Virus record (IMG/VR): IMGVR_UViG_3300004151_000006 | Span: 124,001 to 188,000 of that record | DNA length: 64,000 bases | Strand: one strand, 5' to 3' | Shown here: one piece after another, positions 12,015 through 64,000 of the stretch | How positions within the stretch are numbered: the first letter of the stretch is position 1 | Layout: every line of letters starts with the position of its first letter | Program-made: the position numbers and the translations under genes | The notes under the pieces: generated by a model | Told to the model about the DNA's origin: nothing | Database searches by the model: none | What the model saw: only the letters and a program-made list of their open reading frames with translations

Positions 12015-12021
12015 CAGTATA

Positions 12022-16885: not shown

Positions 16886-16978
16886 GGACGTGGCACTCCC
16901 ATTAGGTGTGGTAGTAGGTGTCAAAACACGCTAGGTGAGTTGGGGCGTGTTGAAACAGAACAATATAGATCTTTAGAC

Positions 16979-22891: not shown

Positions 22892-22990
22892 TCCACATTT
22901 CATATACATAAATATCTAGAGTCATCATCTTTTACACAGATACCTTGGATTGCATAAAGGTCACGTACCCCGTGTAGTCCAAGGTATCTT

Positions 22991-23003
22991 GAATATATAT
23001 TAC
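22991..23003 (+). promoter_or_regulatory. Putative early promoter
   Basis: GAATATATATTAC. Confidence 0.7.
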
Positions 23004-23076
23004 TTTATTGATGTCTGGAGTAAAAGTTACTTTAGACCATGTCATCCACTTCAACTTAAGTAAGGAGCTTTCTCAC

Positions 23077-24249: not shown

Positions 24250-24275
24250 CCGGCATTTCCTGATCACATTCTGAC

Positions 24276-42132: not shown

Positions 42133-43366
42133 TACCACTGTGCTTTTAGATGGTGGACGATATCATCTTCCTAATGATGGAAATCTCTCTAATGAAAAGA
42201 TAGTCAAAGATACACTCCAGACACAGACTGCTTGGAATGTGGATCGATATGCAAGTAGTCTTTCTCTCATGGCAGGATATGCTGATGGATTTCCTCTCAG
42301 TGTAACCTATTTTAATCAAGAGACTAGACCTGGATACAAGTCTACTCCTATTGATATTGTGATGTCAAATACTGAACATGTAGTACATAAAAACATCATC
42401 AAGATCCTTAATTTTGAGGTACGATTATCTGGACCACTAGATTTTCAAAATGACAAAGAAGAGACATTCATGACTGCCGTAGGTCAAATGACCACACCAG
42501 CTGGATTCAAACCTGCTATAGGTGATTTCTTTTATATGTTACAGCAAGATGGTAAATGGGGTATAGTGGCTATCCGAGATATAGATAGATTATCATTGAG
42601 CCAGAATACTTTCATCAAATGTGATATTGAATTAGTAGCATTCTTGACTGTAGATCAAAGAGAGTTCATTGAACAGTGTGTGACTAATACTTATTACTTT
42701 GATAAACAGAAATATCACATTAACAATATGACATTACTTAAAGAGACTTCATATATCCAAATGAATATTGTGACACAGATACGTAAAGAGATGATCTCTT
42801 ATTACTACGAACAGTTTTACAATAAAGTGATTAATAGTGTGGTGTTGCCAGATGGTACGTATGATCCCTATGTAGTAGAATTTTTACATAAGAAAGTGAG
42901 TGTGGTGGATTTCCCTAAAAGACCTCAACAATTATTACCTGAACTTTATGATTATAACAATAGTATCTGGGCTTGTTTCACTGAGAAAAATAGATCCAAT
43001 GATCCACGTACTGTAGATAATGCTATCCATTTAAAACGTAGAGAGAATAACTATTGGCAAACTGGTATTACACTTCTTGTAGATAGAGAATATATTGCTT
43101 TAGGTAAAGCTAAGACTAATTGGAAATTTGGTGAAAAAGAAATAATGACACCTTATGTATTTTCGATTGAGTTTTATTTGTGCAACACAAAAGATATGAC
43201 AGGACCCGAATTATTAGTTTATGAGACACTCAGTCAATCTATCAATATTGAACGTATCATTGAGTTTATGCAGACCTATAGAAATTGGGAAAAAGAATAT
43301 GCATTTTATTGGATACCTATCTCATTGTGGCTCATGGATATAGCTTACGCCAATATCACAGATTGA
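42056..43366 (+). CDS. Probable virion structural protein
   Basis: 436 aa; PAIGDFF and YDPYVVEFL; same block. Confidence 0.5.
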   Translation: MGLLPRSGSLTPTSQQQVEPHQTLPNTTVLLDGGRYHLPNDGNLSNEKIVKDTLQTQTAWNVDRYASSLSLMAGYADGFPLSVTYFNQETRPGYKSTPIDIVMSNTEHVVHKNIIKILNFEVRLSGPLDFQNDKEETFMTAVGQMTTPAGFKPAIGDFFYMLQQDGKWGIVAIRDIDRLSLSQNTFIKCDIELVAFLTVDQREFIEQCVTNTYYFDKQKYHINNMTLLKETSYIQMNIVTQIRKEMISYYYEQFYNKVINSVVLPDGTYDPYVVEFLHKKVSVVDFPKRPQQLLPELYDYNNSIWACFTEKNRSNDPRTVDNAIHLKRRENNYWQTGITLLVDREYIALGKAKTNWKFGEKEIMTPYVFSIEFYLCNTKDMTGPELLVYETLSQSINIERIIEFMQTYRNWEKEYAFYWIPISLWLMDIAYANITD

Positions 43367-48155: not shown

Positions 48156-49316
48156 TTACCCGTTATATATTTTTTCATGTAAAGATAAGATACGTATCTC
48201 GATATAATCTCTGAGTTCATGGTGTTTACAGTTTGTCCAGGGTCTATTGTTTTTAAGCCTATTGATGATACGTTTGTATTCCACTAAGATAGTTTTAAAT
48301 AAAGTATTTTTAGGATTTAGTTTTAAAATATTAAAAATGAGTTCAAAGATATCAATCTCTTTTAAGATAGTGAGAAACATATATGGTCGTTTATGATCAG
48401 TATACCAACGTGTTTGACTGGATATCAAGAGATCTCTCAATGATCCGGAAAATAATAGATCCGTATTGAGAAGATTAATAGCTCTTGTATTATTGTGTTT
48501 AATGAGATCGAATTCTTTAAATAAAGATAGCATTCCATCGGTGTAAGTAGTAGTTATCTTACCATATTGATTTTCTACTTCTATTTCATCATAAGTCCTA
48601 GTAGATACAGTATCTAATGTATCAATATTGATCAACCATCGTAATTGTTTCATGAGCCAAATATTGGTGAGATCTGATTGAAAAGTATTATAAATGAAAT
48701 TCTTATAAAAGAATAAATTAGCTGAAGTGATATCTGGATATTGCATTATACCTTCTTTCTTAAATTTATACCATTTAAATATTAATGCTATTGGATCAAT
48801 CAAAAATATACATTGACTGGGTAATTGGTCATAAAAACGTATCCTACTTCCATTGAGATTAAGACTGAATTCATCACTATCATGCCACCAGACTTTCATG
48901 ACAGATATGTCTTTCCAAATATCCCATCCACTATTAAATGGTAAATATTGTAACGTATCAAGATCTTCATTCGATATGACAAATTCTTTTGTATAGCTCC
49001 CAGAGATATAATAGCGTCTAAAGATACTGCCTGTGTGGGTAGTGTCATATTTACTTATAAGTTCATTTCTTAAATCTGATATATAAAACATATATCGATC
49101 TACATCATTGGAGAATTTATTCATGTATTTCAAATCTACCATATGACAAAGAATATCGAGTAATCGCATACCATGTGGATAACTATTACTGTTACCATTT
49201 AAGTATTGATTGGTTTTATTGTTAGTATAGATTCTCATTCGTTCAAGGTAGTATTTATATTTAGGTATGGACCTTGGTGCACCTGGAGGAATATGATCTA
49301 AGAGATAATTCAGCAC
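48156..49316 (-). CDS. Hypothetical protein
   Basis: 386 aa, AAGGAG RBS, divergent from the putative chimallin gene. Confidence 0.6.
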   Translation of the reverse strand: MLNYLLDHIPPGAPRSIPKYKYYLERMRIYTNNKTNQYLNGNSNSYPHGMRLLDILCHMVDLKYMNKFSNDVDRYMFYISDLRNELISKYDTTHTGSIFRRYYISGSYTKEFVISNEDLDTLQYLPFNSGWDIWKDISVMKVWWHDSDEFSLNLNGSRIRFYDQLPSQCIFLIDPIALIFKWYKFKKEGIMQYPDITSANLFFYKNFIYNTFQSDLTNIWLMKQLRWLINIDTLDTVSTRTYDEIEVENQYGKITTTYTDGMLSLFKEFDLIKHNNTRAINLLNTDLLFSGSLRDLLISSQTRWYTDHKRPYMFLTILKEIDIFELIFNILKLNPKNTLFKTILVEYKRIINRLKNNRPWTNCKHHELRDYIEIRILSLHEKIYNG

Positions 49317-49396: not shown

Positions 49397-49409
49397 AGAT
49401 ATATATTAT
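49397..49409 (+). promoter_or_regulatory. Putative early promoter of chimallin
   Basis: AGATATATATTAT. Confidence 0.65.
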
Positions 49410-49536
49410 CATAGTGGTGATACAATATAAAGATAGATTTTGGCACGACGGTGACCATCATAGTCTGTCCGAACATAGCGTATCACTACGCGTCTGGACG
49501 CATCATTCACCCTTACCTCCATGGAGGAGAACATTC

Positions 49537-51288
49537 ATGGCTCTTACCACTTCGACGACTGGTTCGACTGCTCCCAATGCTCAACCGCAGGGTGCACCCA
49601 CCATGCAGCCCACTGCATCAGCTGCTACCGCTACTGCAGTGTCACCTGATCCGACCATGATCACCACCCCCATCAATACCACTACGGCTCCTCGTCCGGA
49701 AGAGGGTGCTATTCCCAATAAGAAAGATCGCGGCAATATCCGTGACTTGCTCCATAAAGCCCCTATCCCGATGGCCATGAGTGAAGGTGCTACCAAGTAC
49801 ATTGAAGGTCTTAAGAAGTACTACGCTGAACATCAAAATATCGAATACCGAAATATCCGTGTCAATGCTCTGGCCCAGTTGCCCGGCGTCTTCATGGTTG
49901 AATACAATGATCGTGTGGCTCCTCTGATCATGCATGAGATGGTCGGCAGCATGATTGCAGACAACTCTCCTGACACCGTCGTCATGCGTCAGGCTGCCCA
50001 GGTCTATGCCCAGTACGTTCGGGGAAACATCGAAGCTCGGTTTACGCTGCTGCCGGCTGTGGTAATTCATCCTTCGGATTACCACAAGGTCGAGATCATG
50101 GGCAGCATCTTGTCCAACACCCTGTCCAATATCTCCGGACAGGAGTCTATCAATTCAGCAGTTCTCAAAAATGAACCGTTGATCATCTCGATCAACCAGT
50201 CGGAAGTCATGCCGTTCATTGATCGGCTGTCTCCGCATGGCATCCCTGGTCGGCACGACATCGGCTTCAAGCTGAGCCTGGCTCCCCAGAACATGAACTA
50301 CCAGTCCCGCAACGAGATGTTCGGCAACTGGAAAAATGAGATCGAGGATATCGCCGCTGTCACGGCATATACCGAGATTATCACTGGTCCGATTGATCCC
50401 ATGACTGGTATCCCCAAGTTCGTCCCGGTGGTTCATATCACCGACGTTCTGTCGCGTATCCAGGATATCAGGATGTACGTTATCCTGGTTTCCCTGGCTG
50501 CCGAGATCTTCATTCGTCAGGGCCTCTGGGAACACCAGTTCGCCCGTTTTAACAAGGATGAGCCCAACCTTGGATATCTGGTCAATGACCCCAATACCAA
50601 GGACCTCATGTTCATCGATAGTGCTCCGGCACTCAAGAGCTTCATCTATACCTACATGACTCCTCCGGTCCTGGTCGTCGACACCCTGGACGGACGGTCA
50701 CGTATCCCGGATACCGAGTTGACGGTCCTCTCGGCATCTGCGGATCTCAATGCCTACAAGCGGCAGGTCCTGACTAACTGCTTCAAAGAGCTCTGCACCA
50801 CGTTGAGCCTTGATCAGGCCAATGCTCTGGTGCCATTCCAGCCGTATTCTTACGAGAATACCGGATTGGCTTCCATCGGCGGCAGTCTCACGGACACTCG
50901 CGAGATCGACTACCTGCGTCTGGCTACCAACTGGAAGTCTGAAGTCGGCACCGCAGCCCTGCTCATGCAGCGTGCAGCTGGTGCCAAGCCGTCAGATCGT
51001 TTCGATCTGCAGAAGCGCTTCTACAGCGATGCTGTGGCGCTTTACAACAACAACATCATCCGTGTCGATCTGTCTTCCATCGCTGCCATCCAGTCCGAGA
51101 TCAGCCGTAACATCACGTTGGATCGTACGTCCTGGTCTCCCAGCATGGCCAACATCGACCTCACCGGCGCCATCGACGATACCCGCAAGTTCCTCAGTGG
51201 AGCTGGCAGTCTGGGTGTCAATGGCGGAGCCTTCGTCAATATGTCGACCATGTCCATCTATGGTGGGCCTGGTTACTACGGTCGTTAG
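49537..51288 (+). CDS. chmA: Chimallin, phage nuclear shell protein (phiKZ gp54-like)
   Basis: About 583 aa; disordered Thr/Ala/Pro N-terminus and Gly/Tyr C-terminal tail; strong codon bias; early promoter; directly upstream of nvRNAP beta'-N as in phiKZ; LTDTREIDYL. Confidence 0.75.
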   Translation: MALTTSTTGSTAPNAQPQGAPTMQPTASAATATAVSPDPTMITTPINTTTAPRPEEGAIPNKKDRGNIRDLLHKAPIPMAMSEGATKYIEGLKKYYAEHQNIEYRNIRVNALAQLPGVFMVEYNDRVAPLIMHEMVGSMIADNSPDTVVMRQAAQVYAQYVRGNIEARFTLLPAVVIHPSDYHKVEIMGSILSNTLSNISGQESINSAVLKNEPLIISINQSEVMPFIDRLSPHGIPGRHDIGFKLSLAPQNMNYQSRNEMFGNWKNEIEDIAAVTAYTEIITGPIDPMTGIPKFVPVVHITDVLSRIQDIRMYVILVSLAAEIFIRQGLWEHQFARFNKDEPNLGYLVNDPNTKDLMFIDSAPALKSFIYTYMTPPVLVVDTLDGRSRIPDTELTVLSASADLNAYKRQVLTNCFKELCTTLSLDQANALVPFQPYSYENTGLASIGGSLTDTREIDYLRLATNWKSEVGTAALLMQRAAGAKPSDRFDLQKRFYSDAVALYNNNIIRVDLSSIAAIQSEISRNITLDRTSWSPSMANIDLTGAIDDTRKFLSGAGSLGVNGGAFVNMSTMSIYGGPGYYGR

Positions 51289-51306
51289 ACCATCCATCTA
51301 TGGTGG

Positions 51307-51332
51307 GATGCCCCTGCACATGCAGGGGCATC
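51307..51332. terminator. Hairpin after chimallin
   Basis: GATGCCCCTGCA-CA-TGCAGGGGCATC. Confidence 0.6.
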
Positions 51333-51397
51333 TCCCATATATAAATATGCTCTATAAATTTTTATGAATTTATACCCATACTAATCATGTTGTAGGA

Positions 51398-51410
51398 AAA
51401 TATATATCAT
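51398..51410 (+). promoter_or_regulatory. Putative early promoter of nvRNAP beta'-N
   Basis: AAATATATATCAT. Confidence 0.65.
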
Positions 51411-51464
51411 AATGTTGAAGACACAGATAGTCTTTTATATAAATAAAAAGACAGGAGGTCTGAT

Positions 51465-53057
51465 TTGACAGTACCACATTATGCAGATATAAGCAAGGTA
51501 CCTAGTATTTATCATCATCTTAATCTTACTGAATTTGATCTAGATCCTCATGATGGTATCATGGATCGGATTCTTGATCTTGCACGTATTCTCACTCCTA
51601 TTGATTTTGAAAAACTATTTCAACAATCGCATAATGCGGGGATTATCAATCAGGGTCATCTGGTGGTAAAAAAGTTATCTGATGAATTCACTCGTGGTAT
51701 CTTTGCTGAATCAGATCAAGATGTACCATATCAACCACACTGTGAATGTAAAAAATTAAAAGGTCAGATGCACATAAATATGGTATGCCCCATTTGTAAT
51801 ACTAAAGTTTCCAATGAGTTTGTAGATCATTTATCACATGTAGCATGGTTGGGTATCCCCGATGGGCTTCCAAAAATGTTACATCCCGTTTGGTATCTAG
51901 TACTTAGAGATTGGCTTGGTGGTAAGAAAGGTGAATCATCTATCATTGATGCTATCTTAAATCCAGAATTGGAACTACCTAAAGATCTTAAAGCTATCAT
52001 CCCTGAACAAAGTTATATGTATTTTTATAATCATGCTGATGAAATTATGCAGGTATTGATGAATTTATATGAACCAACTAAACGAAAGAAATATACACCA
52101 TGGATTAAACGAATGTATCATGAATTTAAAGATATCATGTTTACCTCTAAGTTTCCAATTTTACACAATAGTTTACATCCATTTATGTCTGGTAGTTCCA
52201 CATTAAAATATGTAGATAAACCTTGTAAAGAGATCCTCAATGCTATCTTTGATCTTTCTGCTATTACATTTAGTTATCATACTCAATGGAAAGATAGATT
52301 GCTTACTGAAAAGAGAAAGAAAGAAATCAATAAAACACTTTATGATATTTACCGTAATGTTGTTGCATATTACATTGTGTTGATCAATGAGAAAGTTGGT
52401 AAGAAATCAGCTATCATGCGTAAACATAATTTTGGTACTCGAATGCATTTCACTATCAGATCAGTCGTAGTACCAATTACGGGTGCACATGATCCAGATG
52501 AAATTTATTTACCTTGGAAGTGTATAGTCAATGCCTATAAGTTGGAAATAATCGGAAGATTGGTAGATGATTATGGAATAGAAGCACCAAAAGCATATGT
52601 AAAACATCTTAATGCACTAGTGCATTATGATCCAATGATCCATGATATCATGCTCAAATTGATGAAGGAATGTCCATTTAAAGGTCTTCCTTTTCTCATA
52701 GGTAGAAATCCCACATTACGTTTATTTTCTATCATGCAATTGTTTTGTACTAAAATCAAAACAGATCTTCATGATCAGACTATTTCAATTTCTCCTCTGA
52801 TCCTTAAAGGAAGTAATACTGATTTTGATGGTGATGAATTAAATGGTGTCAATATCAAAGAAATGGCAGGTGTAATAGATATGGATACTATGCATCCAAG
52901 AGAAGCAGTACTGGATACGAATTCACCAAATGTATCCACATTGGTCATGCCATCAAATCAAGCATTACAAAATGCACACAGATTTGTACATCAAAATCCA
53001 GATATTGGTTATATCATTATGGGTGGTGGAAATACAGTCGGAGGTATGGCAGCATGA
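51465..53057 (+). CDS. Non-virion multisubunit RNA polymerase beta'-N subunit (phiKZ gp55-like), uninterrupted
   Basis: Zn finger CEC...CPIC, RKHNFGTRMHFTIRSVV, GRNPTL, catalytic NTDFDGDELN. Confidence 0.9.
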   Translation: MTVPHYADISKVPSIYHHLNLTEFDLDPHDGIMDRILDLARILTPIDFEKLFQQSHNAGIINQGHLVVKKLSDEFTRGIFAESDQDVPYQPHCECKKLKGQMHINMVCPICNTKVSNEFVDHLSHVAWLGIPDGLPKMLHPVWYLVLRDWLGGKKGESSIIDAILNPELELPKDLKAIIPEQSYMYFYNHADEIMQVLMNLYEPTKRKKYTPWIKRMYHEFKDIMFTSKFPILHNSLHPFMSGSSTLKYVDKPCKEILNAIFDLSAITFSYHTQWKDRLLTEKRKKEINKTLYDIYRNVVAYYIVLINEKVGKKSAIMRKHNFGTRMHFTIRSVVVPITGAHDPDEIYLPWKCIVNAYKLEIIGRLVDDYGIEAPKAYVKHLNALVHYDPMIHDIMLKLMKECPFKGLPFLIGRNPTLRLFSIMQLFCTKIKTDLHDQTISISPLILKGSNTDFDGDELNGVNIKEMAGVIDMDTMHPREAVLDTNSPNVSTLVMPSNQALQNAHRFVHQNPDIGYIIMGGGNTVGGMAA

Positions 53058-53707
53058 GTTATAGTTATACTCGCATTGAGCTTCCCAATAATGCTGCTAC
53101 CATTGGTCAACTCTTTGGAAATGTCTCTACATCAGATTGTTTGAAACAGATAGCTCAGAATTTTGGATATAATACTTCTTATTTTGGTAGTGATGCAGAT
53201 CCAACAAGAAATATGTATGCATATTTTCGTGAAGTCACATATGCACCATATCTTCAGACTGCTGAATGTTTTAAACAAGCAAATGCAATCATAGATAGAC
53301 AAGATGTATTTACACCAATCACTACAATAGAACAATTAAAAGAGGGTCCTCCCCCATGTATGTGGGTACCTATCTTGATGTATCCCCCAATGATGGAACT
53401 CCTTAAAGATGAAAAGATCTGTGGATATGGATATGATCCTAATAGTTTTCCTGAAGTAGATCCTGATCCTTATGGTAGATTGATCAACAATGGTACTATT
53501 CAATTGATCAATGATAATACAGTGTTTAATGATAAAAATGATCCCAATGCATTTTATGTTGAAGAAGTGTATACTACATACGATCCTAAAGTGACTGAGG
53601 ATGAACTCAATGCATTAGAGAAAACTAGGAAGTTTTTGGATATGTTCATGACTGCTGAAGATACCATGTATTTGGATCCAACGAATCCATTTGAGTTAAG
53701 GGGCTAA
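53054..53707 (+). CDS. Conserved jumbo-phage protein (possible phiKZ gp59/Imp3 position)
   Basis: Overlaps the RNAP stop; C-terminal DPT motif; assignment from synteny only. Confidence 0.5.
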   Translation: MSYSYTRIELPNNAATIGQLFGNVSTSDCLKQIAQNFGYNTSYFGSDADPTRNMYAYFREVTYAPYLQTAECFKQANAIIDRQDVFTPITTIEQLKEGPPPCMWVPILMYPPMMELLKDEKICGYGYDPNSFPEVDPDPYGRLINNGTIQLINDNTVFNDKNDPNAFYVEEVYTTYDPKVTEDELNALEKTRKFLDMFMTAEDTMYLDPTNPFELRG

Positions 53708-53711
53708 TGAA

Positions 53712-53737
53712 TGGGGAGCTAGATATCTAGCTCCCCA
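53712..53737. terminator. Loopless palindrome
   Basis: TGGGGAGCTAGATATCTAGCTCCCCA. Confidence 0.6.
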
Positions 53738-53773
53738 CTAATATAATCCACAACCACCATTGGAGGATATCTA

Positions 53774-55276
53774 ATGGATATCAAGCCTATAGACAATTCC
53801 ATCTCTAAAACACTTGATGCTTGTAGTGAAGAAGAATTGTCACATATGTCATCAAATTATCCTTTTATCATTAAAGCTGGTAAAATTCCAGACTGCTGTC
53901 TGAATTATAATAATTTACTTCCTATTTGGCTTTATCATTGTGGTACTGCACCCCTTGGCTATGTGACTGCACAAGAGATGATCTTTCAATGTAAATCTTG
54001 TGGAAGACATATTTTGGCTAAAATATTCTTTGCAGTCAATGGTACGTGTTATGTGACTCAAGAAAATTCACGTGAAGTATTGTTTAGAAATGATGCATTG
54101 AAAGATACTCTTAATCGTATGTGGTATATCTTTAAGATTCCGAATAGTCTTAATCAAAGTGAATTAATTCAGTATCATCAACTTGCTGAAAATAATAGAT
54201 TTGCTTTCAATCTCGGTAATGGTAAATTGATGACATATCTTGAAGATATATCTGCTTGTGATTCCAATATGAATACTATTTCTACTACTGAGACACTTCA
54301 GATCATTGAAGGATCCATTCCTCCAGTAGAACTCAAAGGTAATGAACCAGATATGTTGACTATAGATGAATTGCCCCCTATTTTGACACCAGAAGAATTA
54401 GTTGAACAGGGAAAAGAAGTGTTACCTAAATTGAAATGTGATGCTAATCTTTTAGATACGGATTCAATAATGAAATATGATACTGTTATTTTGACTACTG
54501 AAAATGGTGTAAAATGTATCGATTATCCGATTTCTGAAGAAACTATAAAAAATATGAAAGATATTCCAATGATCAATAAGTATCTTCAGAAGCTTAAGAC
54601 TGGTGAATCACTCACTGAAGAAGATTTGGTAGCTAAGAAAATACACGATCTTATTATTGAAGGTGGACCAGTAGCTAAGGCTAATTTTGATATCAAGGGA
54701 AAAGAGAAAACTCTATTGAAAGATACCTTCTGTTTTAGAATAGGTGGTGATGTTACTAAAAATGATAATTCTAATGTTGGTTACAAGAATAAAATAGAAT
54801 TTTATAATGTGTATTGTAAATCACTTTCTTTATTGCCAAATCGTGATGAGATACTTGATCAGGGTACTATACGATTAAAACATATGTATCTTCAAGATGT
54901 TGCAATAAATCAATCTAATACGAGTGAAACACCTAAACAAAAGATCAATTTGATACTTAGAAATGTAGTATATGAAAAGATTGATATCACATCTAAACAA
55001 ACTTATTATGAATATGTGGATAAACTTATTGTTGAACTTGATAGTGAAAAATCAAATGATCAAGTATGTATTAATATTCTTCTTAATATTGAAGCTGGAG
55101 AATGGACAATCAATTATATCAATATGGGTGAAACTGTAGTTGATGAAGATTTTAAATTTGATGAAGTGGTGGAAGATACTGATGGTGTCCATACCGAACT
55201 CTCATGTGGTAAAGAAGGATATAATGATTTGGATGGTGAGTGTGCTAGATGTAGAAATAGAGAATGTGATAGTTAA
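53774..55276 (+). CDS. Hypothetical protein with N- and C-terminal Cys clusters
   Basis: HCG...CKSC; C-terminal CGKEGY....ECARCRNREC. Confidence 0.65.
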   Translation: MDIKPIDNSISKTLDACSEEELSHMSSNYPFIIKAGKIPDCCLNYNNLLPIWLYHCGTAPLGYVTAQEMIFQCKSCGRHILAKIFFAVNGTCYVTQENSREVLFRNDALKDTLNRMWYIFKIPNSLNQSELIQYHQLAENNRFAFNLGNGKLMTYLEDISACDSNMNTISTTETLQIIEGSIPPVELKGNEPDMLTIDELPPILTPEELVEQGKEVLPKLKCDANLLDTDSIMKYDTVILTTENGVKCIDYPISEETIKNMKDIPMINKYLQKLKTGESLTEEDLVAKKIHDLIIEGGPVAKANFDIKGKEKTLLKDTFCFRIGGDVTKNDNSNVGYKNKIEFYNVYCKSLSLLPNRDEILDQGTIRLKHMYLQDVAINQSNTSETPKQKINLILRNVVYEKIDITSKQTYYEYVDKLIVELDSEKSNDQVCINILLNIEAGEWTINYINMGETVVDEDFKFDEVVEDTDGVHTELSCGKEGYNDLDGECARCRNRECDS

Positions 55277-55285
55277 CTATTAATG

Positions 55286-55317
55286 TGGATAGGGGACCCA
55301 TTTGGGTCCCCTATCCA
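55286..55317. terminator. Perfect hairpin, near-copy of the 25325 element
   Basis: TGGATAGGGGACCCA-TT-TGGGTCCCCTATCCA. Confidence 0.6.
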
Positions 55318-55386
55318 TACGTTTAAATATACGATTTATGGTCAAGATATAGGGATTTATATATTTTTTCAAGGAGATCACTATAT

Positions 55387-55830
55387 ATGTCTACTACACC
55401 AATTCGGATGTTGCCAGTACTTAGTAGTGTGACAGGTATTCTTACTGATATACATGAAATCACAGCTAGTATTATTAGATTTGTCATGTGCACACCTGGG
55501 ACCACATCTAGTTACGTAGAAGAAGAATTGGTTTCTTTTAGATATTTAGCTGGTAAAGTGGGATATGATAAAGATCAAATGTGTAAGATGTTAGAAGTTG
55601 GACTTACTGGTATTTTTCAAAGATATTTTCCAGACCACACACCAATTGTAGCAGTGACAAATGCACCATATGAAGGAAATGAATTGGAGTTTAGATATAC
55701 CATTACCATTGACGTCACTTATCGTACAAGTGATGGGGATATCATTTCTGGTATTGAAGCTGGTACTTTCTTAGTAGATTCAGATAACAGGATTACTCTT
55801 AAATTCAACAATAGTAGCACTACCATTTAA
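55387..55830 (+). CDS. Conserved hypothetical / possible virion protein
   Basis: AAGGAG RBS; within the core block. Confidence 0.55.
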   Translation: MSTTPIRMLPVLSSVTGILTDIHEITASIIRFVMCTPGTTSSYVEEELVSFRYLAGKVGYDKDQMCKMLEVGLTGIFQRYFPDHTPIVAVTNAPYEGNELEFRYTITIDVTYRTSDGDIISGIEAGTFLVDSDNRITLKFNNSSTTI

Positions 55831-55841
55831 GGAGAAACCAT

Positions 55842-56600
55842 ATGACAAAACCAGACTTTGGTGATCTTAGAGCACCACGTGGTAGAGAACGTGATTTGGA
55901 AAATATGGTAACACATTTCAGAAAATTACAAAATTCATTAATCATATTTACTGAATCTGAATTTAGTAAATACACACCAATTTATATGGCTGAATATAGA
56001 AAGGAAGTATCTGAATATACACCAAGTGAATTGGAATTTATTGCAAACTTATCTAAAGAGTTTCATTCTAGAATTGATCTTTATAAACCAACATATGTTG
56101 TGAGTGATCAATTAACACCTATCCAAAAAGAACTTCAACTCAGTAGAACAAACCATGAACAAATATTCACTGCTGGGGAAAAATTATATATCTATTTTGG
56201 AAATAACATACTTAGAGAAGTACTCTTTATTCTTCCAGAAATACAACAACCTTTTAGTTCACTTAAAACCACTGAAGCTAAAGAAGCTGTTGACATTTGT
56301 CAAAATATTACAGCTAATGCACATGATCAGCCATGGAAAGTCTCTGAAGCAGTGAATAATTTAGCGCACCATATGTTTGCTTCTCAAGATATGGATCAGA
56401 CCGTAATTAATGGTAAGAATTTTATGCAACATGTGATCAAGCTTCATAACTCAAAATATTTCAATACTAAGATCACTGCATCTGGAAAATTAGAATATAA
56501 ACAAGATAACTCTGTTATACCAACAATAAATCCTACAACTACTCCAATAGATAAAGTTGATAAAAAAGGAGATGTGTCATTAGACGATCTTTTTGATTAA
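55842..56600 (+). CDS. Hypothetical protein ending in DDLFD
   Basis: AAGGAG RBS; core block before SbcD. Confidence 0.65.
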   Translation: MTKPDFGDLRAPRGRERDLENMVTHFRKLQNSLIIFTESEFSKYTPIYMAEYRKEVSEYTPSELEFIANLSKEFHSRIDLYKPTYVVSDQLTPIQKELQLSRTNHEQIFTAGEKLYIYFGNNILREVLFILPEIQQPFSSLKTTEAKEAVDICQNITANAHDQPWKVSEAVNNLAHHMFASQDMDQTVINGKNFMQHVIKLHNSKYFNTKITASGKLEYKQDNSVIPTINPTTTPIDKVDKKGDVSLDDLFD

Positions 56601-56616
56601 GGAGGGTCAATATCTT

Positions 56617-57759
56617 GTGATTAAACAACTTTATATATCTGATCTTCATTTTGGAAAATCTAGGATAGATCCAATACGATTAAGAGAGACTTTATTAGAA
56701 GAAATAGCTAAAGAGATAGAGGATGTTCAAATCATATTTTTTTGTGGTGATATGTTTAATCAGATGTTATTTTTAGATCATCCTGCAGCATATCAAGCTA
56801 TATTGTTTATTACTGGAGTATTGCATTTAGCTAAACAACACAATGTGATAGTGAGATTTTTGCGTGGTACATATACCCATGACAGGGAACAACAGAGAAT
56901 TATTGATGGTCTCGGTATCCAGGGTGTAAACTATCGAGTCATCAATGAAATTTATGTGGAAACTATTAGTGATTGGAATAATAATGATACTGGTAAATTG
57001 AAAATACTCTATTTACCAGATTCATTACCATACAGAAACATTATTCAGATCTATAATAAAATTAAAGAGCTTTATACTTTAGTTGGTTGGGATAAATGTG
57101 ATTTGATCATTGGACATGGGGCATTTAGTCATTGTTTTCCTGAACATATAAAACTTCCACCGTGTGTTTATACAGTGAATGACATAAATCAATTTGTTAG
57201 TGGGTATGTGGTCATGGGGCATATACATACTCCCAGTAAAAAAGAAAATGTCATATATGTGGGTAGTTTTGAACGTATGTCCCATGGTGAAGAAGAAAAG
57301 AAAGGATATTTGATTGGTTATAAAGATCAAGATCATTGGAAATTTAAATTCAAAGAAAACAAACAGGCCACACTCTTTATCACCATGTATCCGAAAGAAC
57401 ATACAAAAGAAAATCTCCTTAATGAGGTCTATCAATTTATTGAAAATAAGTTTCCTAATCAGACTGGATATCTTCGTATTATACACCATGATCCAGAATT
57501 TAAATCTATCATTTTAAACATCTGTTATCAAAAATATCCAAACATTAAGATTACCTTTAAAAATGATACTACACATAAATCTGAAATGGAATTAGATGAA
57601 TGTGATATTGATGCTACTTTAGAAGTAGATACTTTATCAATAGAAAATATAGCAGCACATATAACTGATGTATTGGCTAAAGATAGTATTTATGGAACAT
57701 ATCACTATGGATATGATGAAATACGAAATACATTAGAAATATTATCTTTGAAAAAATAG
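56617..57759 (+). CDS. sbcD: SbcD/Mre11-like metallophosphoesterase nuclease
   Basis: SDLHFG, CGDMF, RGTYTHD, IGHG, MGHIH, YVGSF.R.SHGEE; GGAGG RBS before GTG 56617. Confidence 0.9.
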   Translation: MIKQLYISDLHFGKSRIDPIRLRETLLEEIAKEIEDVQIIFFCGDMFNQMLFLDHPAAYQAILFITGVLHLAKQHNVIVRFLRGTYTHDREQQRIIDGLGIQGVNYRVINEIYVETISDWNNNDTGKLKILYLPDSLPYRNIIQIYNKIKELYTLVGWDKCDLIIGHGAFSHCFPEHIKLPPCVYTVNDINQFVSGYVVMGHIHTPSKKENVIYVGSFERMSHGEEEKKGYLIGYKDQDHWKFKFKENKQATLFITMYPKEHTKENLLNEVYQFIENKFPNQTGYLRIIHHDPEFKSIILNICYQKYPNIKITFKNDTTHKSEMELDECDIDATLEVDTLSIENIAAHITDVLAKDSIYGTYHYGYDEIRNTLEILSLKK

Positions 57760-57769
57760 GAGATAGATT

Positions 57770-58615
57770 ATGGATTTAGAAAATATTAACAATGTTGCTG
57801 GGGATGGGAGCTTTGGATTAGCTCCCATCCTCAATATGTTTTCCACACATGCCAATAATAAAAATAGGCCAAAATGGGATCTTTATGTAGTCAACATGCT
57901 TACACTTATTAGAAATAATCAACAAAAAGGAAAACAACTATCGGTACTTATTAATAATACTATTAGAGATGCAGAGTTACTTATTACACATATTGAAAAT
58001 TATGTGGAGTTGGATAAATTAAGTCTTAGTCAACCGACACTTATTATTTATATACCTTTTTATCAAATACCACAATTATATGTGAAAAAGATTTCACCAT
58101 CTTTAGTTGAACAACAATTGGCTTGTGATAAAATACGGAATCAATTGAAACCAAGAGTCTATACTCAAGGTAGCCTTACCATCCATGTGGTGTATGTTGG
58201 TAGTAATAGATCTACTCCAAAATGTGAATTAATCAATTATATCAATGCACAGATATCCAATAGTTATAAGTTTAAACGCACTGCTATCATTTCACATATT
58301 GCTATGGATCTACATCTTTTTCAAGATATAGTTGAGATTATATTGATTGAATGCTTTACAGGTAAACTTAAAAAGAGTAATGTGTTTAATGAAAAAGTCT
58401 TTAATACAAAAGAACTTCCATTTCATCCTTACATACATTTACTATTGGGTGACAATACTTTTATTAAACGAACACTTAAGAAAAAACAATATGATGAATT
58501 ATTGGCTTTTGCAAAATCACATTCTTGGAAGTATCGACCTACCGTCCTCATAGAGAAGGATCTTCTCTCCATGAAGTTAGTGGAAGATAAGCACTTCTTT
58601 GAATATAAACTTTAA
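57770..58615 (+). CDS. Conserved jumbo-phage protein (phiKZ gp66 position)
   Basis: VNMLTLIRN, ISH...DL, LIECFTG, LLGD; synteny. Confidence 0.55.
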   Translation: MDLENINNVAGDGSFGLAPILNMFSTHANNKNRPKWDLYVVNMLTLIRNNQQKGKQLSVLINNTIRDAELLITHIENYVELDKLSLSQPTLIIYIPFYQIPQLYVKKISPSLVEQQLACDKIRNQLKPRVYTQGSLTIHVVYVGSNRSTPKCELINYINAQISNSYKFKRTAIISHIAMDLHLFQDIVEIILIECFTGKLKKSNVFNEKVFNTKELPFHPYIHLLLGDNTFIKRTLKKKQYDELLAFAKSHSWKYRPTVLIEKDLLSMKLVEDKHFFEYKL

Positions 58616-58638
58616 CACCCATACCGTGGGGAAGGAGC

Positions 58639-59256
58639 ATGATCTTTATGTCTGATGCACCCAATTATAATAATTTGTGGTCTACCACTTCACGTGAAAA
58701 GGATCAAAAGAATTCTAATCAGTTGTCATTTGGTGTATTTAATCGTATTGCTGGTTTTTCTGTCTTTATGGGTGATAGTCCTGGACGTCCGAAATTTAAA
58801 CACTCTCTCAATAATGAAAGTATTGTACTTCTGGAAGAATACATTGATACTTTGCTTAATGCTAAAGGTGAACATAAAGAATATTTGATTTCTACCAAAT
58901 ACAACATGGAAACTAAACAATCAGAAAAGATCTCTCAGATCACATTTATTCGTGATGAAAAAGGTATCTTTCATATCGAATGCTACAATAAAGAATTAGG
59001 TAGTCCGGTGATGTTCACTCTTCGATCTACGACTACATACACTACTGGTGGAGATGGTATCTCTGTTGCTAAAAAATCTGAACTTGCTATGAAGAGTCTT
59101 AAGAAAACCTTGCAGGATATCAATTTAGCTAAGTGGAATTCTCCTGCTATGGCACCCAATCGTAATGGTGGTGGTAAGTTTGGTGGAAACAATGGTAGTA
59201 ATAGTTCTGGTAGTGGTGGTAGTAAACCCAGTGGTGGTGATGATCTGTTCGATTGA
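58639..59256 (+). CDS. Conserved protein with Gly/Ser linker and acidic DDLFD tail (phiKZ gp67 position; SSB-like architecture)
   Basis: NGGGKFGGNNGSNSSGSGGSKPSGGDDLFD. Confidence 0.55.
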   Translation: MIFMSDAPNYNNLWSTTSREKDQKNSNQLSFGVFNRIAGFSVFMGDSPGRPKFKHSLNNESIVLLEEYIDTLLNAKGEHKEYLISTKYNMETKQSEKISQITFIRDEKGIFHIECYNKELGSPVMFTLRSTTTYTTGGDGISVAKKSELAMKSLKKTLQDINLAKWNSPAMAPNRNGGGKFGGNNGSNSSGSGGSKPSGGDDLFD

Positions 59257-59270
59257 TCATAGATCGGATG

Positions 59271-59297
59271 TAGAGGAGACCCAATGGGTCTCCTCTA
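59271..59297. terminator. Perfect hairpin
   Basis: TAGAGGAGACCCA-A-TGGGTCTCCTCTA. Confidence 0.6.
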
Positions 59298-59321
59298 TGT
59301 ACTGTGTTTCATCATGAGAAT

Positions 59322-59334
59322 AAATATATATTAC
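59322..59334 (+). promoter_or_regulatory. Putative early promoter
   Basis: AAATATATATTAC. Confidence 0.7.
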
Positions 59335-59384
59335 ATTTATGATGTGACTTGGATAAATGTCTATTTTAAACAGGAGGATGATGT

Positions 59385-60410
59385 GTGATGTCCGTCCCAC
59401 AAAGGAAATTGGGACAATTGCAGGATGAACCCCAATTTGAGAATTGTTTTGTTGAACACTTTTATACGAGTCAAAACATAGTACCATTGGGGTATGTCGT
59501 ACTGCGGTTGTTTGATGAAATGACCACATTAGCTAGTCTTTATCCACAGATACCTAAAATTATACGTAATGGTACAAATGCAAAATATCAAGAAGATTTT
59601 CTCTATCTTTGTGGAAAACGATCACGGAATGTGTTGGGTATTCAAAGTAAAATTTGTATAGTAGTTGCACCCTATGAAACAACATTACATGATGTACAGT
59701 GTGATTATTTACTGATCATTGGTGGAAAAAAGGTACATATTAAAAATAGTAATATTAATAGTTTATTCATTTATGGTACTGAACAGGTGATTGTAGAAAA
59801 TGTGACTATCATTGATACATTTATTGATATTTCAAATACTTTAGAGATGCGTGGAGATTATTTTCATTGTGATCTTAATTATATTACTGTAAAAAATCTC
59901 ATTACTAACAATATTGACATTGTTAAAGATGCATTTTATTTATTGGGGCTTACCAATGTGAACTTAAATAAAACAAGTCCAAAGATGTTAGAACAATTTC
60001 CAAATATGTATTTGTGTTCGATGGAATACTCAAATAAAATTGTAGTGTTTAAGTTATCACCCACTATGATACATCTTAGATTCATGTGGCTTATATGGGC
60101 AATGTGGAATGTAGATCATTTTGATATTGATATTACACAAAGCCATTTGACACTGTTGGAAAGTAAATCTATTAATAATAGTCCAAATTATCTTCGTATG
60201 TCCAGATATCTTCATGAACGTAATCCTTATTATCAATATTTTTATAACAAAATGGTTAGTATCAATATGCATCTTTCTGATAGTGAAATTAATATATTTG
60301 AAGAAAGTACTAATAGATGTAATACTACTTCATTTGATTTGGTACCCCAGATATTCACATCACGTGTAGATTCTAGTATTAAATCAAAGTATTTAATAAA
60401 ATCCGTATAA
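59385..60410 (+). CDS. Early protein with beta-solenoid-like region
   Basis: Promoter at 59322, AGGAGG RBS, hairpin at 60415. Confidence 0.6.
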   Translation: MMSVPQRKLGQLQDEPQFENCFVEHFYTSQNIVPLGYVVLRLFDEMTTLASLYPQIPKIIRNGTNAKYQEDFLYLCGKRSRNVLGIQSKICIVVAPYETTLHDVQCDYLLIIGGKKVHIKNSNINSLFIYGTEQVIVENVTIIDTFIDISNTLEMRGDYFHCDLNYITVKNLITNNIDIVKDAFYLLGLTNVNLNKTSPKMLEQFPNMYLCSMEYSNKIVVFKLSPTMIHLRFMWLIWAMWNVDHFDIDITQSHLTLLESKSINNSPNYLRMSRYLHERNPYYQYFYNKMVSINMHLSDSEINIFEESTNRCNTTSFDLVPQIFTSRVDSSIKSKYLIKSV

Positions 60411-60414
60411 TGTA

Positions 60415-60452
60415 GGATGCATACGGGAGCTCTAGAGCTCCCGTATGCATCC
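60415..60452. terminator. Loopless 38-bp palindrome
   Basis: GGATGCATACGGGAGCTCTAGAGCTCCCGTATGCATCC. Confidence 0.6.
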
Positions 60453-60463
60453 ATCATGGTTGA

Positions 60464-60476
60464 AAGTATATATTAT
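60464..60476 (+). promoter_or_regulatory. Putative early promoter of the gp68-like operon
   Basis: AAGTATATATTAT. Confidence 0.65.
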
Positions 60477-60556
60477 TTTTTTGTAGACCCAATGATATAT
60501 GGAAAAAAATAAATATCCATGTTACTATGTAATGAACTTAGGGAGGATATCACTTT

Positions 60557-62230
60557 ATGCAATTCGTTCGTCGCGACAACGAATTTGGTTTATCTTGCAT
60601 TTATTTGGATATGGAAGGTATTGAGCTTGGTATTCGAGATGTATATAAACCAGGATTTCATTCACTCACTGAAGATGAGTTTTTAAAATTGGCAGAGACT
60701 AGTGAACCATTTAAGATGTTTCGGGTAGATACTTATAATGTACTCAAACCCACCAATAGTTCATTTAATTGGGATTGTGTTTTTGGACCTGTTAATCATT
60801 TTCTTAAATCTATGACCAATGATGAATGTCGTACAATTGCAGAGACACTTATCTCTGTCCATCATGATATTGTTTCTGAGATGCAATATGGTGCTAGCTT
60901 ATCAAGTAATTTAATTGAGATCACTAAGAGTTTAGCTAATCAGTTGGATTGTATGGAACGTGAACTTAATCTTTGTGAAAGATTGGAAGTTTATGTAAAC
61001 AATCCACTCAATATGGATATTCCATTATTTGAAAATGCAGGTAAACGTGCTCAAGATAAAGCAGATATGACTTTTCATAGACCTGAAGTAGTATTACTCA
61101 CTGCTATCACAGTTCTTAATAAATTATTATCTCCCGTACTTGGTGTGTTTATTGAACATTGTAAAAAACAGTTAGACAATAGTTTAAAAGAACTCCATTG
61201 TGTAAATATGATTATGCCCATTTTGTATAGAAAATATCCAGACTTAGTACCAAAACTTAAATGGTATATCAGAAATATTATTAAACCAAATGTGAAGAAT
61301 ACTGTAGAATATGTGGCAAATGGATTTACGTTAGAATTAGAATCACAAAAGAGTTTTGCTAATATCTTAGTAAGAAAATTAGTCAGTGTCAATTTGTTTA
61401 AAGAAGGTGGAAATTTAATGACTTATATCACAGCATCTATTAAAGAGTCTACTCGTACACCTACATTTATGTCAGTTACAAGAAATGCAATCAAAGAAAT
61501 GGATAATCCTACTGAGAGTAGTAGTTCACCCTCTAGTGAAGAAGGTAATACTTCAGCGTTAGAATATGGATCTCGTTGTTCTGATCATACTGTGGATTTT
61601 CCAGTACTTACAAGTTTAGCTGCAAAATCACTTATTAAAAATATCATCAATGAAGAAGAAATTGATCCTGAACTTTTTGAAGAGTGTTTAGCATACTATC
61701 GAATAAATCTTATCACTATGACACCCATCAATTTATATTTGTTAGCTACGACATATGGATATAGCTTAGGTGGTGCTAAATCTATCTGGGCACTTAACAT
61801 GAAAGAGATAATTGAACTTGTCACAGTATTTCAATTCCAGTGTTTGAAACGTGGGTATCATGCTCTTATTCCAGCAGTATCTTTAGGTGAAGCTACCCAT
61901 TTGGGATTACCACCAATCAAATCTATTCAGACCCAATTTGATAGTCAACTAAAGACTGCATGGAATGCTTCATTCGAATATAAAAACTGTAAAGCAAGAT
62001 TTAATACAATAATCAGTACTTTAGAATGGGACACAGTAGTTAAAGAAATAGTAGAATTTCTTATTAATAATAATAAAGCTATTAATCTCCCATTTTATTT
62101 CTTAGAACAACTAAAGATTGATCATCTTAATCAAAAAGAATATCAGTATCCTGAAATTATTATCAAAACCATTTGTGGATATACATTGGATGTTACAACA
62201 GGCATCTATGAAGGAGCAATTGAAGCATGA
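60557..62230 (+). CDS. nvRNAP specificity subunit (phiKZ gp68-like)
   Basis: 557 aa; position in the core block; acidic linker SSEEGNTSALE; early promoter. Confidence 0.6.
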   Translation: MQFVRRDNEFGLSCIYLDMEGIELGIRDVYKPGFHSLTEDEFLKLAETSEPFKMFRVDTYNVLKPTNSSFNWDCVFGPVNHFLKSMTNDECRTIAETLISVHHDIVSEMQYGASLSSNLIEITKSLANQLDCMERELNLCERLEVYVNNPLNMDIPLFENAGKRAQDKADMTFHRPEVVLLTAITVLNKLLSPVLGVFIEHCKKQLDNSLKELHCVNMIMPILYRKYPDLVPKLKWYIRNIIKPNVKNTVEYVANGFTLELESQKSFANILVRKLVSVNLFKEGGNLMTYITASIKESTRTPTFMSVTRNAIKEMDNPTESSSSPSSEEGNTSALEYGSRCSDHTVDFPVLTSLAAKSLIKNIINEEEIDPELFEECLAYYRINLITMTPINLYLLATTYGYSLGGAKSIWALNMKEIIELVTVFQFQCLKRGYHALIPAVSLGEATHLGLPPIKSIQTQFDSQLKTAWNASFEYKNCKARFNTIISTLEWDTVVKEIVEFLINNNKAINLPFYFLEQLKIDHLNQKEYQYPEIIIKTICGYTLDVTTGIYEGAIEA

Positions 62231-63378
62231 TCATAGCCATTAAACCCAGTTCTTTTGAACCATGTATAAAATTTGTAGATAGTAGTACTACAAGAGTAAT
62301 TCGTGGTACCCATTGTGGTGAAAGTTATTATGGTATTGGTGGATATTTTCATGTCTCTGATAAAATCCAGAAATATAGAATCACTGAATATCATCAAGGT
62401 GTTTATATTGAAAGATATTTTGTTGGTCCTAAGGGATACTTATTTCATCCAAAATGGAGATCTGATAAATTGCTTTGTCAGATTATGATAAAGACCGTTG
62501 ATCCCAGAGTAAACATTTATCGGGGTGATATTACCCATGTACTCATTGATAGACGTGGTATTGAAAAGTGTTTAAAGCTTTATAATGATTTATCTGTCAA
62601 TACAAAGTTTCTCAGTAATATCTTTTATAAATGTGTAAAAGCTGAATGTGAAAATGATGCCTATTTAGGAGAAGCTTTTGATGATGCAGAATGTAGTATA
62701 GATCAATATCAACAACTTAGTTGGGTATTATCTAAACATTTAAATCATGGTAGAGAATTTATTCCACATTATCAACCTGAAGACATTATGAATATATTAC
62801 TTACAGATTTTCAAAGTATACAGCGTGGATATATACCTACAAGACAATTGTTATATTCAGTGGAAGATCTTTTTGTACCAGATGGGAGTCTTACATTTCC
62901 CAATAGATTCAGTGCACAAATACTCAAAAATCCAGGTACATCACAAGATGAAATCATGTCACATGTCGGTGGTGAAATAGGGAGAGATAGTGTATGTACA
63001 GATGATGTAGAATTTATGGATTTAGCAAAATATAGATATAAAATTAAACCAATCACCTATTATAATGAGGCTATCATGGATCTAATTGATGTGTGTAGTA
63101 CTATGGTCTATAGTGATCTTTATTTCGAATATATATCATTAAAATGTGGTAATATAAAATCTACTGTAAGATATGCTGGTGTAATATTAGATTCAGTTTA
63201 TTCAAATGATATATTGAGAAATATAGCTACCATTATCATAGATGATCTCATGCCTACCATTGGTGAGTTTAAGTTTTATAAAACATATGATCAAGAGATC
63301 TATATTGAAGCTAACAATGAACTTATTGTAATAGACATGGTTTTAGGTAATATTATTTCTTTAGCACTACATAGGTAA
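62227..63378 (+). CDS. Probable nuclear import factor PicA/Imp1 (phiKZ gp69-like)
   Basis: Translationally coupled after the gp68-like gene; 383 aa; assignment from synteny only. Confidence 0.5.
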   Translation: MIIAIKPSSFEPCIKFVDSSTTRVIRGTHCGESYYGIGGYFHVSDKIQKYRITEYHQGVYIERYFVGPKGYLFHPKWRSDKLLCQIMIKTVDPRVNIYRGDITHVLIDRRGIEKCLKLYNDLSVNTKFLSNIFYKCVKAECENDAYLGEAFDDAECSIDQYQQLSWVLSKHLNHGREFIPHYQPEDIMNILLTDFQSIQRGYIPTRQLLYSVEDLFVPDGSLTFPNRFSAQILKNPGTSQDEIMSHVGGEIGRDSVCTDDVEFMDLAKYRYKIKPITYYNEAIMDLIDVCSTMVYSDLYFEYISLKCGNIKSTVRYAGVILDSVYSNDILRNIATIIIDDLMPTIGEFKFYKTYDQEIYIEANNELIVIDMVLGNIISLALHR

Positions 63379-63433
63379 TAACAAATTTATCTTTGTATCT
63401 AAATTGATCCGAAAAGAGGAGGGCTATACATAT

Positions 63434-64000
63434 ATGATCCCCATTCTGCCCAATCAAGCATTGCCAAATTATATCAATGATGCAAATATGTTCATGCAGG
63501 GTAGTGCATTTTCTTCAAGATGTGCTACCTTGTATTTATTTACTCCAAAACATCTGTCGGATCAATTCCGCAGACCTCATGTATACAAATTTGAACAGCC
63601 CTTTATTTGGAATATCCAAAACACTATTGAACATAATAAAGTATCACAGCGTAACATCAATATGTCTTCATTCATGGTGGGTAATGCTGAAGCTAATACT
63701 TCCGTTATGCCAAATATGCATGGTATCCCCATTCAAACTAATCCACTTCGTATAATGTGGACATTTGTACTCATTGTTGACAATGATAAAGATCCTTCTA
63801 TTGGTATGTATCTTAAAGTGAATCAGAGAGCCATTTATTCTGGATATTGTACAGATGAACCTGTTAGTGTTGGTCTTAATGGTATGAATCCTCAACCTAA
63901 TCCACAGTGTTTCTTTGTAGTGACACATCGTACTTCTACTAATGTTGGAAATGTAATTAGTCAAACTGGTACTGTGCCACAAATGCATGTATCATCCAAT
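63434..64000 (+). CDS. Conserved protein (phiKZ gp70 position), partial
   Basis: Not in the ORF track. GAGGAGG RBS; open frame MIPILPNQALPNY...QFRRPHVYKF...RAIYSGYCTDEPV to the window end. Confidence 0.65.
   Translation, partial: MIPILPNQALPNYINDANMFMQGSAFSSRCATLYLFTPKHLSDQFRRPHVYKFEQPFIWNIQNTIEHNKVSQRNINMSSFMVGNAEANTSVMPNMHGIPIQTNPLRIMWTFVLIVDNDKDPSIGMYLKVNQRAIYSGYCTDEPVSVGLNGMNPQPNPQCFFVVTHRTSTNVGNVISQTGTVPQMHVSSN

Follow-up and report, generated by a model that had tools for sequence, protein, structure and literature searches.

Few recent findings in phage cell biology are as striking as the phage nucleus, whose known distribution rests on phiKZ-like models of the shell protein chimallin. 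The family described so far includes 201phi2-1 gp105, phiKZ gp54, phiPA3 gp53 (PhuN) and Goslar gp189, with Protein Data Bank (PDB) entries 7SQQ-7SQV, 8FNE and 8IGG, and is represented by PF25677 (Chimallin_Phikzvirus) and phrog_4795 (nuclear shell protein). Prichard et al. defined conserved core gene blocks in the Chimalliviridae: block 1 contains gp052, gp054, gp055 and gp059 (Table S3, PMC10299810), and block 2 contains gp062, gp065, gp066, gp067, gp068, gp069, gp070 and gp071/73 onward; gp052, gp054, gp059, gp062, gp066 and gp069 are chimallivirus-specific (PMC10299810). Among the encoded proteins, gp68 is the fifth, sigma-like promoter-specificity subunit of the non-virion RNA polymerase (nvRNAP) (PMC7598289), and gp69 (PhiPA3 gp63) is the import factor PicA/Imp1. 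Here we describe a 64,000-nt stretch of DNA (the window), bases 124001-188000 of the 286,688-bp IMG/VR record IMGVR_UViG_3300004151_000006 (JGI sample 3300004151, scaffold Ga0066602_10000002). Its 3' part likely corresponds to the first two core gene blocks in an uncultured, deeply branching phage related to the Chimalliviridae, for which homology and synteny point to nucleus-based replication, and at the chimallin position it encodes a 583-aa protein, referred to below as the shell protein.

To characterise this protein, relatives were sought exhaustively with phmmer among 1.84 billion representatives, and 147 of those found were aligned. The AlphaFold2 (AF2) model based on this alignment reached a pLDDT of 84.4 and a pTM of 0.81, and the five models agreed with each other (pLDDT 83.4-84.4). 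Between two tails of low confidence (residues 1-62 and 536-583), which hold a single short helix (543-554), the model shows the two-domain chimallin fold, consisting of an N-terminal alpha/beta domain and a GNAT-like C-terminal domain. In a Foldseek search of the PDB, the top nine matches were all chimallin chains from 201phi2-1, phiPA3 and Goslar (7sqq, 8fne, 7sqs, 7sqr, 8igg A/B, 7sqv, 7sqt and 7squ; E 7e-16 to 1e-13), and the next match had an E-value of 0.02. A fold search of the BFVD database returned as its best 18 matches proteins of 590-690 aa with 9-14% identity; those with a name all belong to jumbo phages (RSF1, Noxifer, RP12, Eowyn, Stratton, D3 and pTD1). Ranks 19-35 of the same search were phage proteins annotated as 'homing endonuclease' or 'endonuclease-like' (from PA5oct, Campylobacter phage CP21 and uncultured Myoviridae), which match part of the model (E 1e-5 to 1e-3, TM-score ~0.3). 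One of the chimallin domains may have its relatives here.

A comparison based on sequence profiles gave the same answer. Aligned by hhalign to an alignment of 37 phiKZ-type chimallins, the 147-sequence family scored 95.5% in local mode (E 1.6e-8, 335 columns) and 98.4% in global mode, whereas unrelated control pairs did not exceed 0.4%. Both families share the motif G-x-L-[ST]-D-x-R-x-[IL]-D-x-L (short form G..[ST]D.R..D.L). Like the phiKZ-type chimallins, the shell protein carries a long low-complexity N-terminal tail and a C-terminus rich in glycine and aromatic residues. Since the structure matches and the sequence-only profile comparison agree, the 583-aa protein, as modelled and aligned here, is truly homologous to the chimallins, albeit at a very great distance. 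An earlier reading of the window from its letters alone, hereafter the sequence-only reading, had proposed a chimallin at this gene, in agreement with both approaches.

Gene order points in the same direction. The genes of the window map to core genes cg3-cg15 of Prichard et al., and they follow the order of phiKZ gp52-gp75, as in seven other GenBank chimalliviruses, in which the neighbourhood of the shell gene is arranged alike; three genes of 500, 341 and 383 aa are inserted (Table 1). The chimallivirus-specific core genes gp059, gp062, gp066 and gp069 are detectable here, in phiKZ order. As with chimallin genes, the shell gene is located directly 5' of the nvRNAP beta'-N gene and 3' of a divergent gene; known chimalliviruses carry a minus-strand gene of ~350 aa at this gp052 position. 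A search of the genome with phrog_3938 (gp052) gave no match, and this equivalence is positional only. The genome was likewise without a match to phrog_3254 (gp059). The gp059-like gene agrees with those of known chimalliviruses in position and size, and aligned to six phage gp059 sequences it scored 96.8% (hhalign, E 2.8e-10, 148 columns). The SbcD-like nuclease is 26% identical to phiKZ gp65 (E 7e-25), with a sub-threshold match to Pfam Metallophos_2 (23.3 bits, cut-off 27).

Table 1 Features of the window and its surroundings. Positions refer to the window unless G000 (genome numbering) is given.
Feature	Position	Strand	Remarks
SbcC	5744-8305	minus	elsewhere in window
DNA polymerase, phiKZ-type	12768-14420	minus	elsewhere in window
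Major head protein, phiKZ-type	14579-16924	minus	phrog_3231
386-aa gene, divergent from shell gene	48156-49316	minus	gp052 (cg3) position; homologues likewise placed and oriented in L006-L009, L032, P0140
AT-rich motif TATATATTAT, candidate early (virion RNAP) promoter element	49400-49409	+	128 nt 5' of shell gene
Chimallin-like, putative major nuclear-shell protein, 583 aa	49537-51288	+	two-domain core ~63-535; disordered tails 1-62, 536-583
GC-rich perfect hairpin	51305-51336	+	13-bp inner stem, 4-nt loop; 17 nt past shell stop codon
nvRNAP beta'-N subunit, 530 aa (phiKZ gp55 type)	51465-53057	+	DFDGD catalytic motif, residues 453-457
gp059 homologue (cg6), 217 aa	53054-53707	+	start overlaps RNAP gene end by 4 nt
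500-aa gene	53774-55276	+	inserted relative to phiKZ and L007; no Pfam/PHROG match
gp062 homologue (cg7), 147 aa	55387-55830	+	phrog_3294 at 2.9e-6; phiKZ gp062 also phrog_3294
252-aa gene	55842-56600	+	gp063/gp064 position; no Pfam/PHROG match
SbcD-like nuclease (gp65, cg8), 388 aa	56593-57759	+	phrog_100 at 2.9e-24
gp066 homologue (cg9), 281 aa	57770-58615	+	phrog_3229 at 2.4e-13; phiKZ gp066 also phrog_3229
gp067 homologue (cg10), 205 aa	58639-59256	+	phrog_3284 at 2e-7; phiKZ gp067 also phrog_3284
341-aa gene	59385-60410	+	no counterpart at this place in phiKZ; no Pfam/PHROG match
gp68 homologue, predicted fifth nvRNAP subunit, 557 aa	60557-62230	+	phrog_3209 at 8.9e-16, residues 75-542; phiKZ gp68 also phrog_3209
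383-aa gene between gp68-like and gp69-like genes	62227-63378	+	overlaps gp68-like stop codon
PicA/Imp1 (gp69, cg12) homologue, 545 aa	63404-65041 (G000 187404-189041)	+	cut by window end; 5' part 63404-64000 in window
537-aa open reading frame	65056-66669		past window; weak gp070 signal, phrog_3520 E 0.035
GC-rich islands in window	5142-5675, 9826-12035, 14579-16924, 23008-24267, 49414-51288		
GC-rich islands, first six	G000 22251-24000, 40751-42750, 56501-59250, 88751-90500, 128751-129750, 133751-136250		
GC-rich islands, last six	G000 138001-141250, 146501-148750, 173251-175750, 189501-191000, 228251-229750, 238251-239750		

Past the window, a 520-aa phrog_3216 protein is followed by the nvRNAP beta subunits and then a helicase, in keeping with phiKZ gp71-75. 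Thus cg4-cg12, the RNAP beta subunits and the helicase are arranged as in the Chimalliviridae (PMC10299810), and the locus differs from them in its three extra genes, the phrog_3216 gene before the RNAP beta genes, a gp052 equivalent escaping detection by sequence, a weak gp070 signal and a tubulin gene that was not found. The 500-aa gene gave no tblastn match in contigs L006-L009, in which the 217-like and 147-like genes adjoin. In two more distant relatives (L012:14460-15729 and L014:13101-14707), the PicA-like block is separated from the RNAP beta genes by a gene pair with a faint DUF2345 match and a PAAR motif, which looks like a tail-spike tip; the phrog_3216 protein of the window genome, a 'baseplate assembly protein' (L010:4776-6338), occupies a similar position. 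Much of this arrangement had been anticipated. A codon-biased gene of ~583 aa (see below), a DFDGD-bearing RNAP subunit of the gp55 type next to it, SbcD and the gp68 homologue were all recognised correctly in the sequence-only reading. The proposed gp65-gp70 order holds for gp66, gp67 and gp68, whose PHROGs follow one another as in phiKZ; it is not strictly kept, with the extra genes 59385-60410 and 62227-63378 interleaved.

The beta'-N subunit matches phrog_2987 ('RNA polymerase beta subunit') at 2e-82 and is 24% identical to phiKZ gp55 (E 2.5e-33), and the beta subunits just past the window match phrog_3295 (1e-128) and phrog_3015 (2e-96). The beta'-N protein matches 296 GenBank phage records, with an identity of at most 29% among the best matches listed; its 24-29% identity to known phages is slightly below the 28-31% of the deepest splits among the known chimalliviruses. 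AR9/PBS1-type and other chimallin-less jumbo phages with a multisubunit RNAP (msRNAP), such as Bacillus phage AgentSmith, resemble the window in their split RNAP genes and gp68-like subunit, and their beta'-N identity to it (26%) is similar to that of the chimalliviruses. Unlike the window, these phages have no shell gene upstream of beta'-N, and they are without the conserved blocks, as stated for the arrangement in PBS1 (Prichard et al., PMC10299810). The conserved blocks argue for common descent with the Chimalliviridae, as judged from gene content and order. In a maximum-likelihood tree of beta'-N, the window forms a clade with L007 and L009 (support 100/100) on a long branch, in line with the new lineage that had been suggested for it. 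Known chimalliviruses and Bacillus phage AgentSmith form a polytomy without a reliable root, and the tree therefore cannot choose between a position as sister to or inside the Chimalliviridae.

Two observations on related beta'-N genes may be added. In IMGVR_UViG_3300028601_000021 (L006:9670-11613), the gene matches the window protein in three pieces (residues 11-323, 324-416 and 417-454) with gaps of ~300 nt, which suggests two introns or other insertions, and in Goslar a group I intron is annotated at the 3' end of the orthologous gene. We also considered a 392-aa 'putative acetyltransferase' of AgentSmith (MW749006, L028:680-1858), located two genes 5' of beta'-N and thus at about the place of chimallin in the chimalliviruses, as a chimallin precursor and rejected it, as it scored -2 and 3 bits against the two chimallin profiles, far from significance. 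An identity of the window phage with the moraphages (PMC12619734) was rejected because these have no RNAP genes.

The sequence-only reading had placed PicA at 62227-63378. For comparison, small family alignments were built for three candidate open reading frames (ORFs) from syntenic metagenomic contigs, and a gp69 family from nine GenBank phages. Only the family of the following 545-aa ORF (six sequences) matched gp69, at 95.7% (hhalign, E 9e-9, 396 columns, covering 15-447 of the 510 family positions); the scores were 0.1% for the 383-aa and 537-aa families and at most 0.4% for unrelated control pairs, so that the import factor homologue lies one gene further downstream. The ORF resembles gp69 in length (545 vs 557 aa) and in its location 3' of the gp68-like gene; it differs in its identity of 16%, in the lack of a match for phrog_3141 (gp69) in the genome and in the ~380-aa gene separating it from the gp68-like gene. 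Its AF2 model from the six-sequence alignment had a pLDDT of 38, too low to be usable, and a search for homologous loci with phiKZ gp69 found only the phiKZ-like PA7. The 383-aa gene has no PHROG, Pfam or phage tblastn match. A gene of 380-408 aa occupies the same slot in L012:8833-9975, L014:8759-9985 and L015:1810-2955, and the window copy is similar by BLASTP only to that of L015 (60% identity), not to those of L012 and L014. Its product is a candidate partner, specific to the lineage, of either the RNAP or the import machinery.

Could the protein have inherited the chimallin fold and nevertheless serve another role, for instance as a GNAT-type enzyme or a scaffold, in a phage that forms no closed nucleus? 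This would fit several of the points that weigh against our interpretation: the identity of only 12-16% to solved chimallins, a family median of 539 aa compared with 629 aa for phiKZ-type chimallins (a core ~90 residues shorter), the position of the beta'-N clade apart from all known nucleus formers, and the lack of a detectable tubulin (PhuZ, PF00091) in the 286.7-kb genome at E <= 1, with positive controls in 13 of 14 genomes. A complex prediction of the core (63-535) with the C-terminal tail (536-583), run on chains without alignments, had a pLDDT of 25-28 and speaks neither for nor against docking of the tail. Further points against our interpretation are that PF25677 and phrog_4795 gave no match at E <= 10 to the protein or in a six-frame search of the genome, none of 90 family members matched PF25677 at E <= 0.01, the family profile matched no chimallin sequence of the PDB, and that the phage is known from metagenomic DNA alone. 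The failed sequence searches are uninformative on the fold and are not counted against it. PhuZ occurs in 66% of chimallin-encoding phages, i.e. it is missing from about one third of the chimalliviruses (PMC10299810), and its absence therefore does not exclude membership of the Chimalliviridae. The shorter length means that lattice contacts may differ. Overall, we regard a role other than shell formation as improbable; judged by homology and synteny, the phage very probably builds a protein nucleus.

The composition of the shell gene is in line with this interpretation. Its GC content is 0.53 and its GC content at third codon positions (GC3) 0.64, compared to a median GC3 of 0.24 across the 212 ORFs that are 150 aa or longer; no more than four of these have a GC3 of 0.64 or above. 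The ATG is preceded by a strong Shine-Dalgarno sequence (GGAGGAG, 49524-49530). The gene for the major head protein shows the same bias (GC3 0.77), which makes it a mark of very high expression; for the shell gene it fits translational selection on genes of this kind, and signs of very high expression are also a feature of chimallin genes. Read differently, a bias common to these two genes could mean that the 583-aa ORF encodes a virion structural protein and that the fold match is a modelling artefact, the more so as phiKZ gp052, the counterpart of the divergent neighbour, is annotated as a head protein. This is hardly credible given the agreement of the five AF2 models, the matches from two separate structure aligners and from profiles of sequence alone, all of which point to chimallin and nothing else, and the lack of a match to any PHROG structural family; the protein has no Pfam or other PHROG match either.

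The intergenic regions contain further signals. A ~10-nt AT-rich class of early promoters has been reported for RNAP-encoding jumbo phages (PMC7598289), and the motif TATATATTAY upstream of the shell gene agrees with it; a promoter function is predicted from this resemblance. All seven copies in the window are on the plus strand, among them those at 49400 (shell gene), at 59325 (TATATATTAC, upstream of the 341-aa gene) and at 60467 (TATATATTAT, upstream of the gp68-like gene), and the variant ATATATATCAT at 51400 precedes the beta'-N gene. The 9-mer TATATATTA is ~20-fold enriched in upstream-oriented intergenic DNA, with 22 such regions and 32 copies genome-wide (both strands). Early expression of the shell gene, as proposed in the sequence-only reading, would be indicated by the motif at 49400-49409, the only sign of it. 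Past the stop codon, the segment 51286-51470 folds with -59.9 kcal/mol (z = -5.9; none of 200 shuffles was equally stable), and its GC-rich hairpin is likely a terminator or an mRNA-stabilising structure. A consensus terminator scan called nothing on the plus strand past the shell gene, because the hairpin has no U-run.

Beyond this genome, the shell protein has at least 355 relatives (50%-identity clusters, phmmer E <= 1e-3), nearly all of 505-654 aa. In BLASTP comparisons, shell proteins fall into two islands without a cross match at E <= 1e-3: the eight known chimallins detect each other at 19-35% identity in all pairs except Goslar-SPLA10, and the window protein and its metagenomic relatives do so at 25-28%. 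Relatives with 23-28% identity retain the order of shell gene and beta'-N, and L006-L009, L032 and the P0140 contig also keep the upstream minus-strand gene. Unlike the chimallins, this family has no cultured representative. We found no description of a second or compact chimallin family in the literature. Whether the 583-aa protein belongs to such a family (at least 355 clusters, median ~540 aa), which would mark a large uncultured sister lineage of the Chimalliviridae in freshwater and other metagenomes, is in our view an evenly balanced question.

Alternatively, the phage could be an ordinary member of the catalogued chimallin phages, for example of one of the three clades of Sun et al. 2025, and its apparent isolation merely a database gap. 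The screen of these authors covered 16 million viral genomes, those of IMG/VR among them, and used six hidden Markov models (HMMs) and a fold check; they report clades without a cultured reference and with GC contents of 27-59% (PMC12625630); moreover, the relative P0003, 44% identical to the window protein, has a precomputed PF25677 match described as 'faint'. However, their screen required an HMM E-value <= 1e-5 (PMC12625630), and the present family was therefore probably missed by it, as seen from the PF25677 result for the window protein and its 90 relatives. The window protein also has no phrog_4795 match, its clade has no BLASTP link to the eight known chimallins, tblastn against 50,697 GenBank phage records gave no match, and the contig is absent from the part of the IMG list of Prichard et al. 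that was compared. We thus consider ordinary membership unlikely. The high divergence and the lack of a close described relative, both suspected from the letters alone, are borne out by these searches and by the RNAP identities given above. What is new is a deeply branching lineage, so far uncultured, whose compact chimallin is invisible to sequence models; the phage-nucleus system itself is known.

If the phage replicates in a protein nucleus, the following course of infection can be proposed. The shell gene would be transcribed very early and strongly, probably by an injected virion RNAP from the TATATATTAY promoter, by analogy with 201phi2-1, Goslar, phiPA3 and phiKZ. Its product, a compact diverged chimallin in which flexible tails flank the alpha/beta and GNAT-like domains, may self-assemble into a lattice around the replicating phage DNA. 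Inside this compartment, the nvRNAP (beta'-N, the gp68-like subunit and the beta subunits past the window) would be responsible for transcription, and the PicA/Imp1-like protein might act as the import factor.

The genome as a whole is rated 100% complete by CheckV and has a GC content of 0.349 (286.7 kb). The sequence is present only in runs labelled as freshwater metagenome, all apparently DNA. Its first 59 bases (G000 1-59) are the exact reverse complement of G000 286630-286688, listed as inverted terminal repeats in IMG/VR, which may be an assembly artefact rather than true genome ends. The 12 GC-rich islands, each about one gene long (GC 0.5-0.6, GC3 <= 0.77), probably represent the most highly expressed genes, and a GC3 shift from 0.24 to 0.64-0.77 is unusual. 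Two of them were identified as the genes for the major head protein and the chimallin-like protein, and the remaining islands had no PHROG match. Gene orientation in the islands is ambiguous because their composition leaves long ORFs open on both strands. Elsewhere, the window encodes a DnaB-like helicase, a UvsX-like recombinase and several phiKZ-group PHROGs (3289, 3013 and 3245), and no tRNA genes were found within its 64 kb. Shine-Dalgarno-like 4-mers precede 57% of the crude ORF starts, compared to a background of 7%, and such heavy use argues against Bacteroidota-type translation initiation in the host.

A family of shell proteins whose chimallin fold is clear and whose chimallivirus synteny is complete thus evades the chimallin models of Pfam and PHROGs, and published censuses such as the 1,103-genome set of PMC12625630 (HMM E-value <= 1e-5) may undercount nucleus formers. 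The claim of a 'first freshwater nucleus-forming phage' refers to isolates only (PMC13573597). The 147-sequence alignment could serve directly as the basis of an HMM for further screens. With a core ~90 residues smaller, retained tails and 12-16% identity, the family is a natural experiment that may tell the indispensable features of chimallin from the others, and it could help to place the compartment's origin with respect to the msRNAP jumbo phages. If it is indeed a second, compact chimallin family, nucleus-based replication would extend well beyond the catalogued family in both distribution and age, the shell may use different lattice contacts, and the import system would have an extra conserved partner of ~380 aa.

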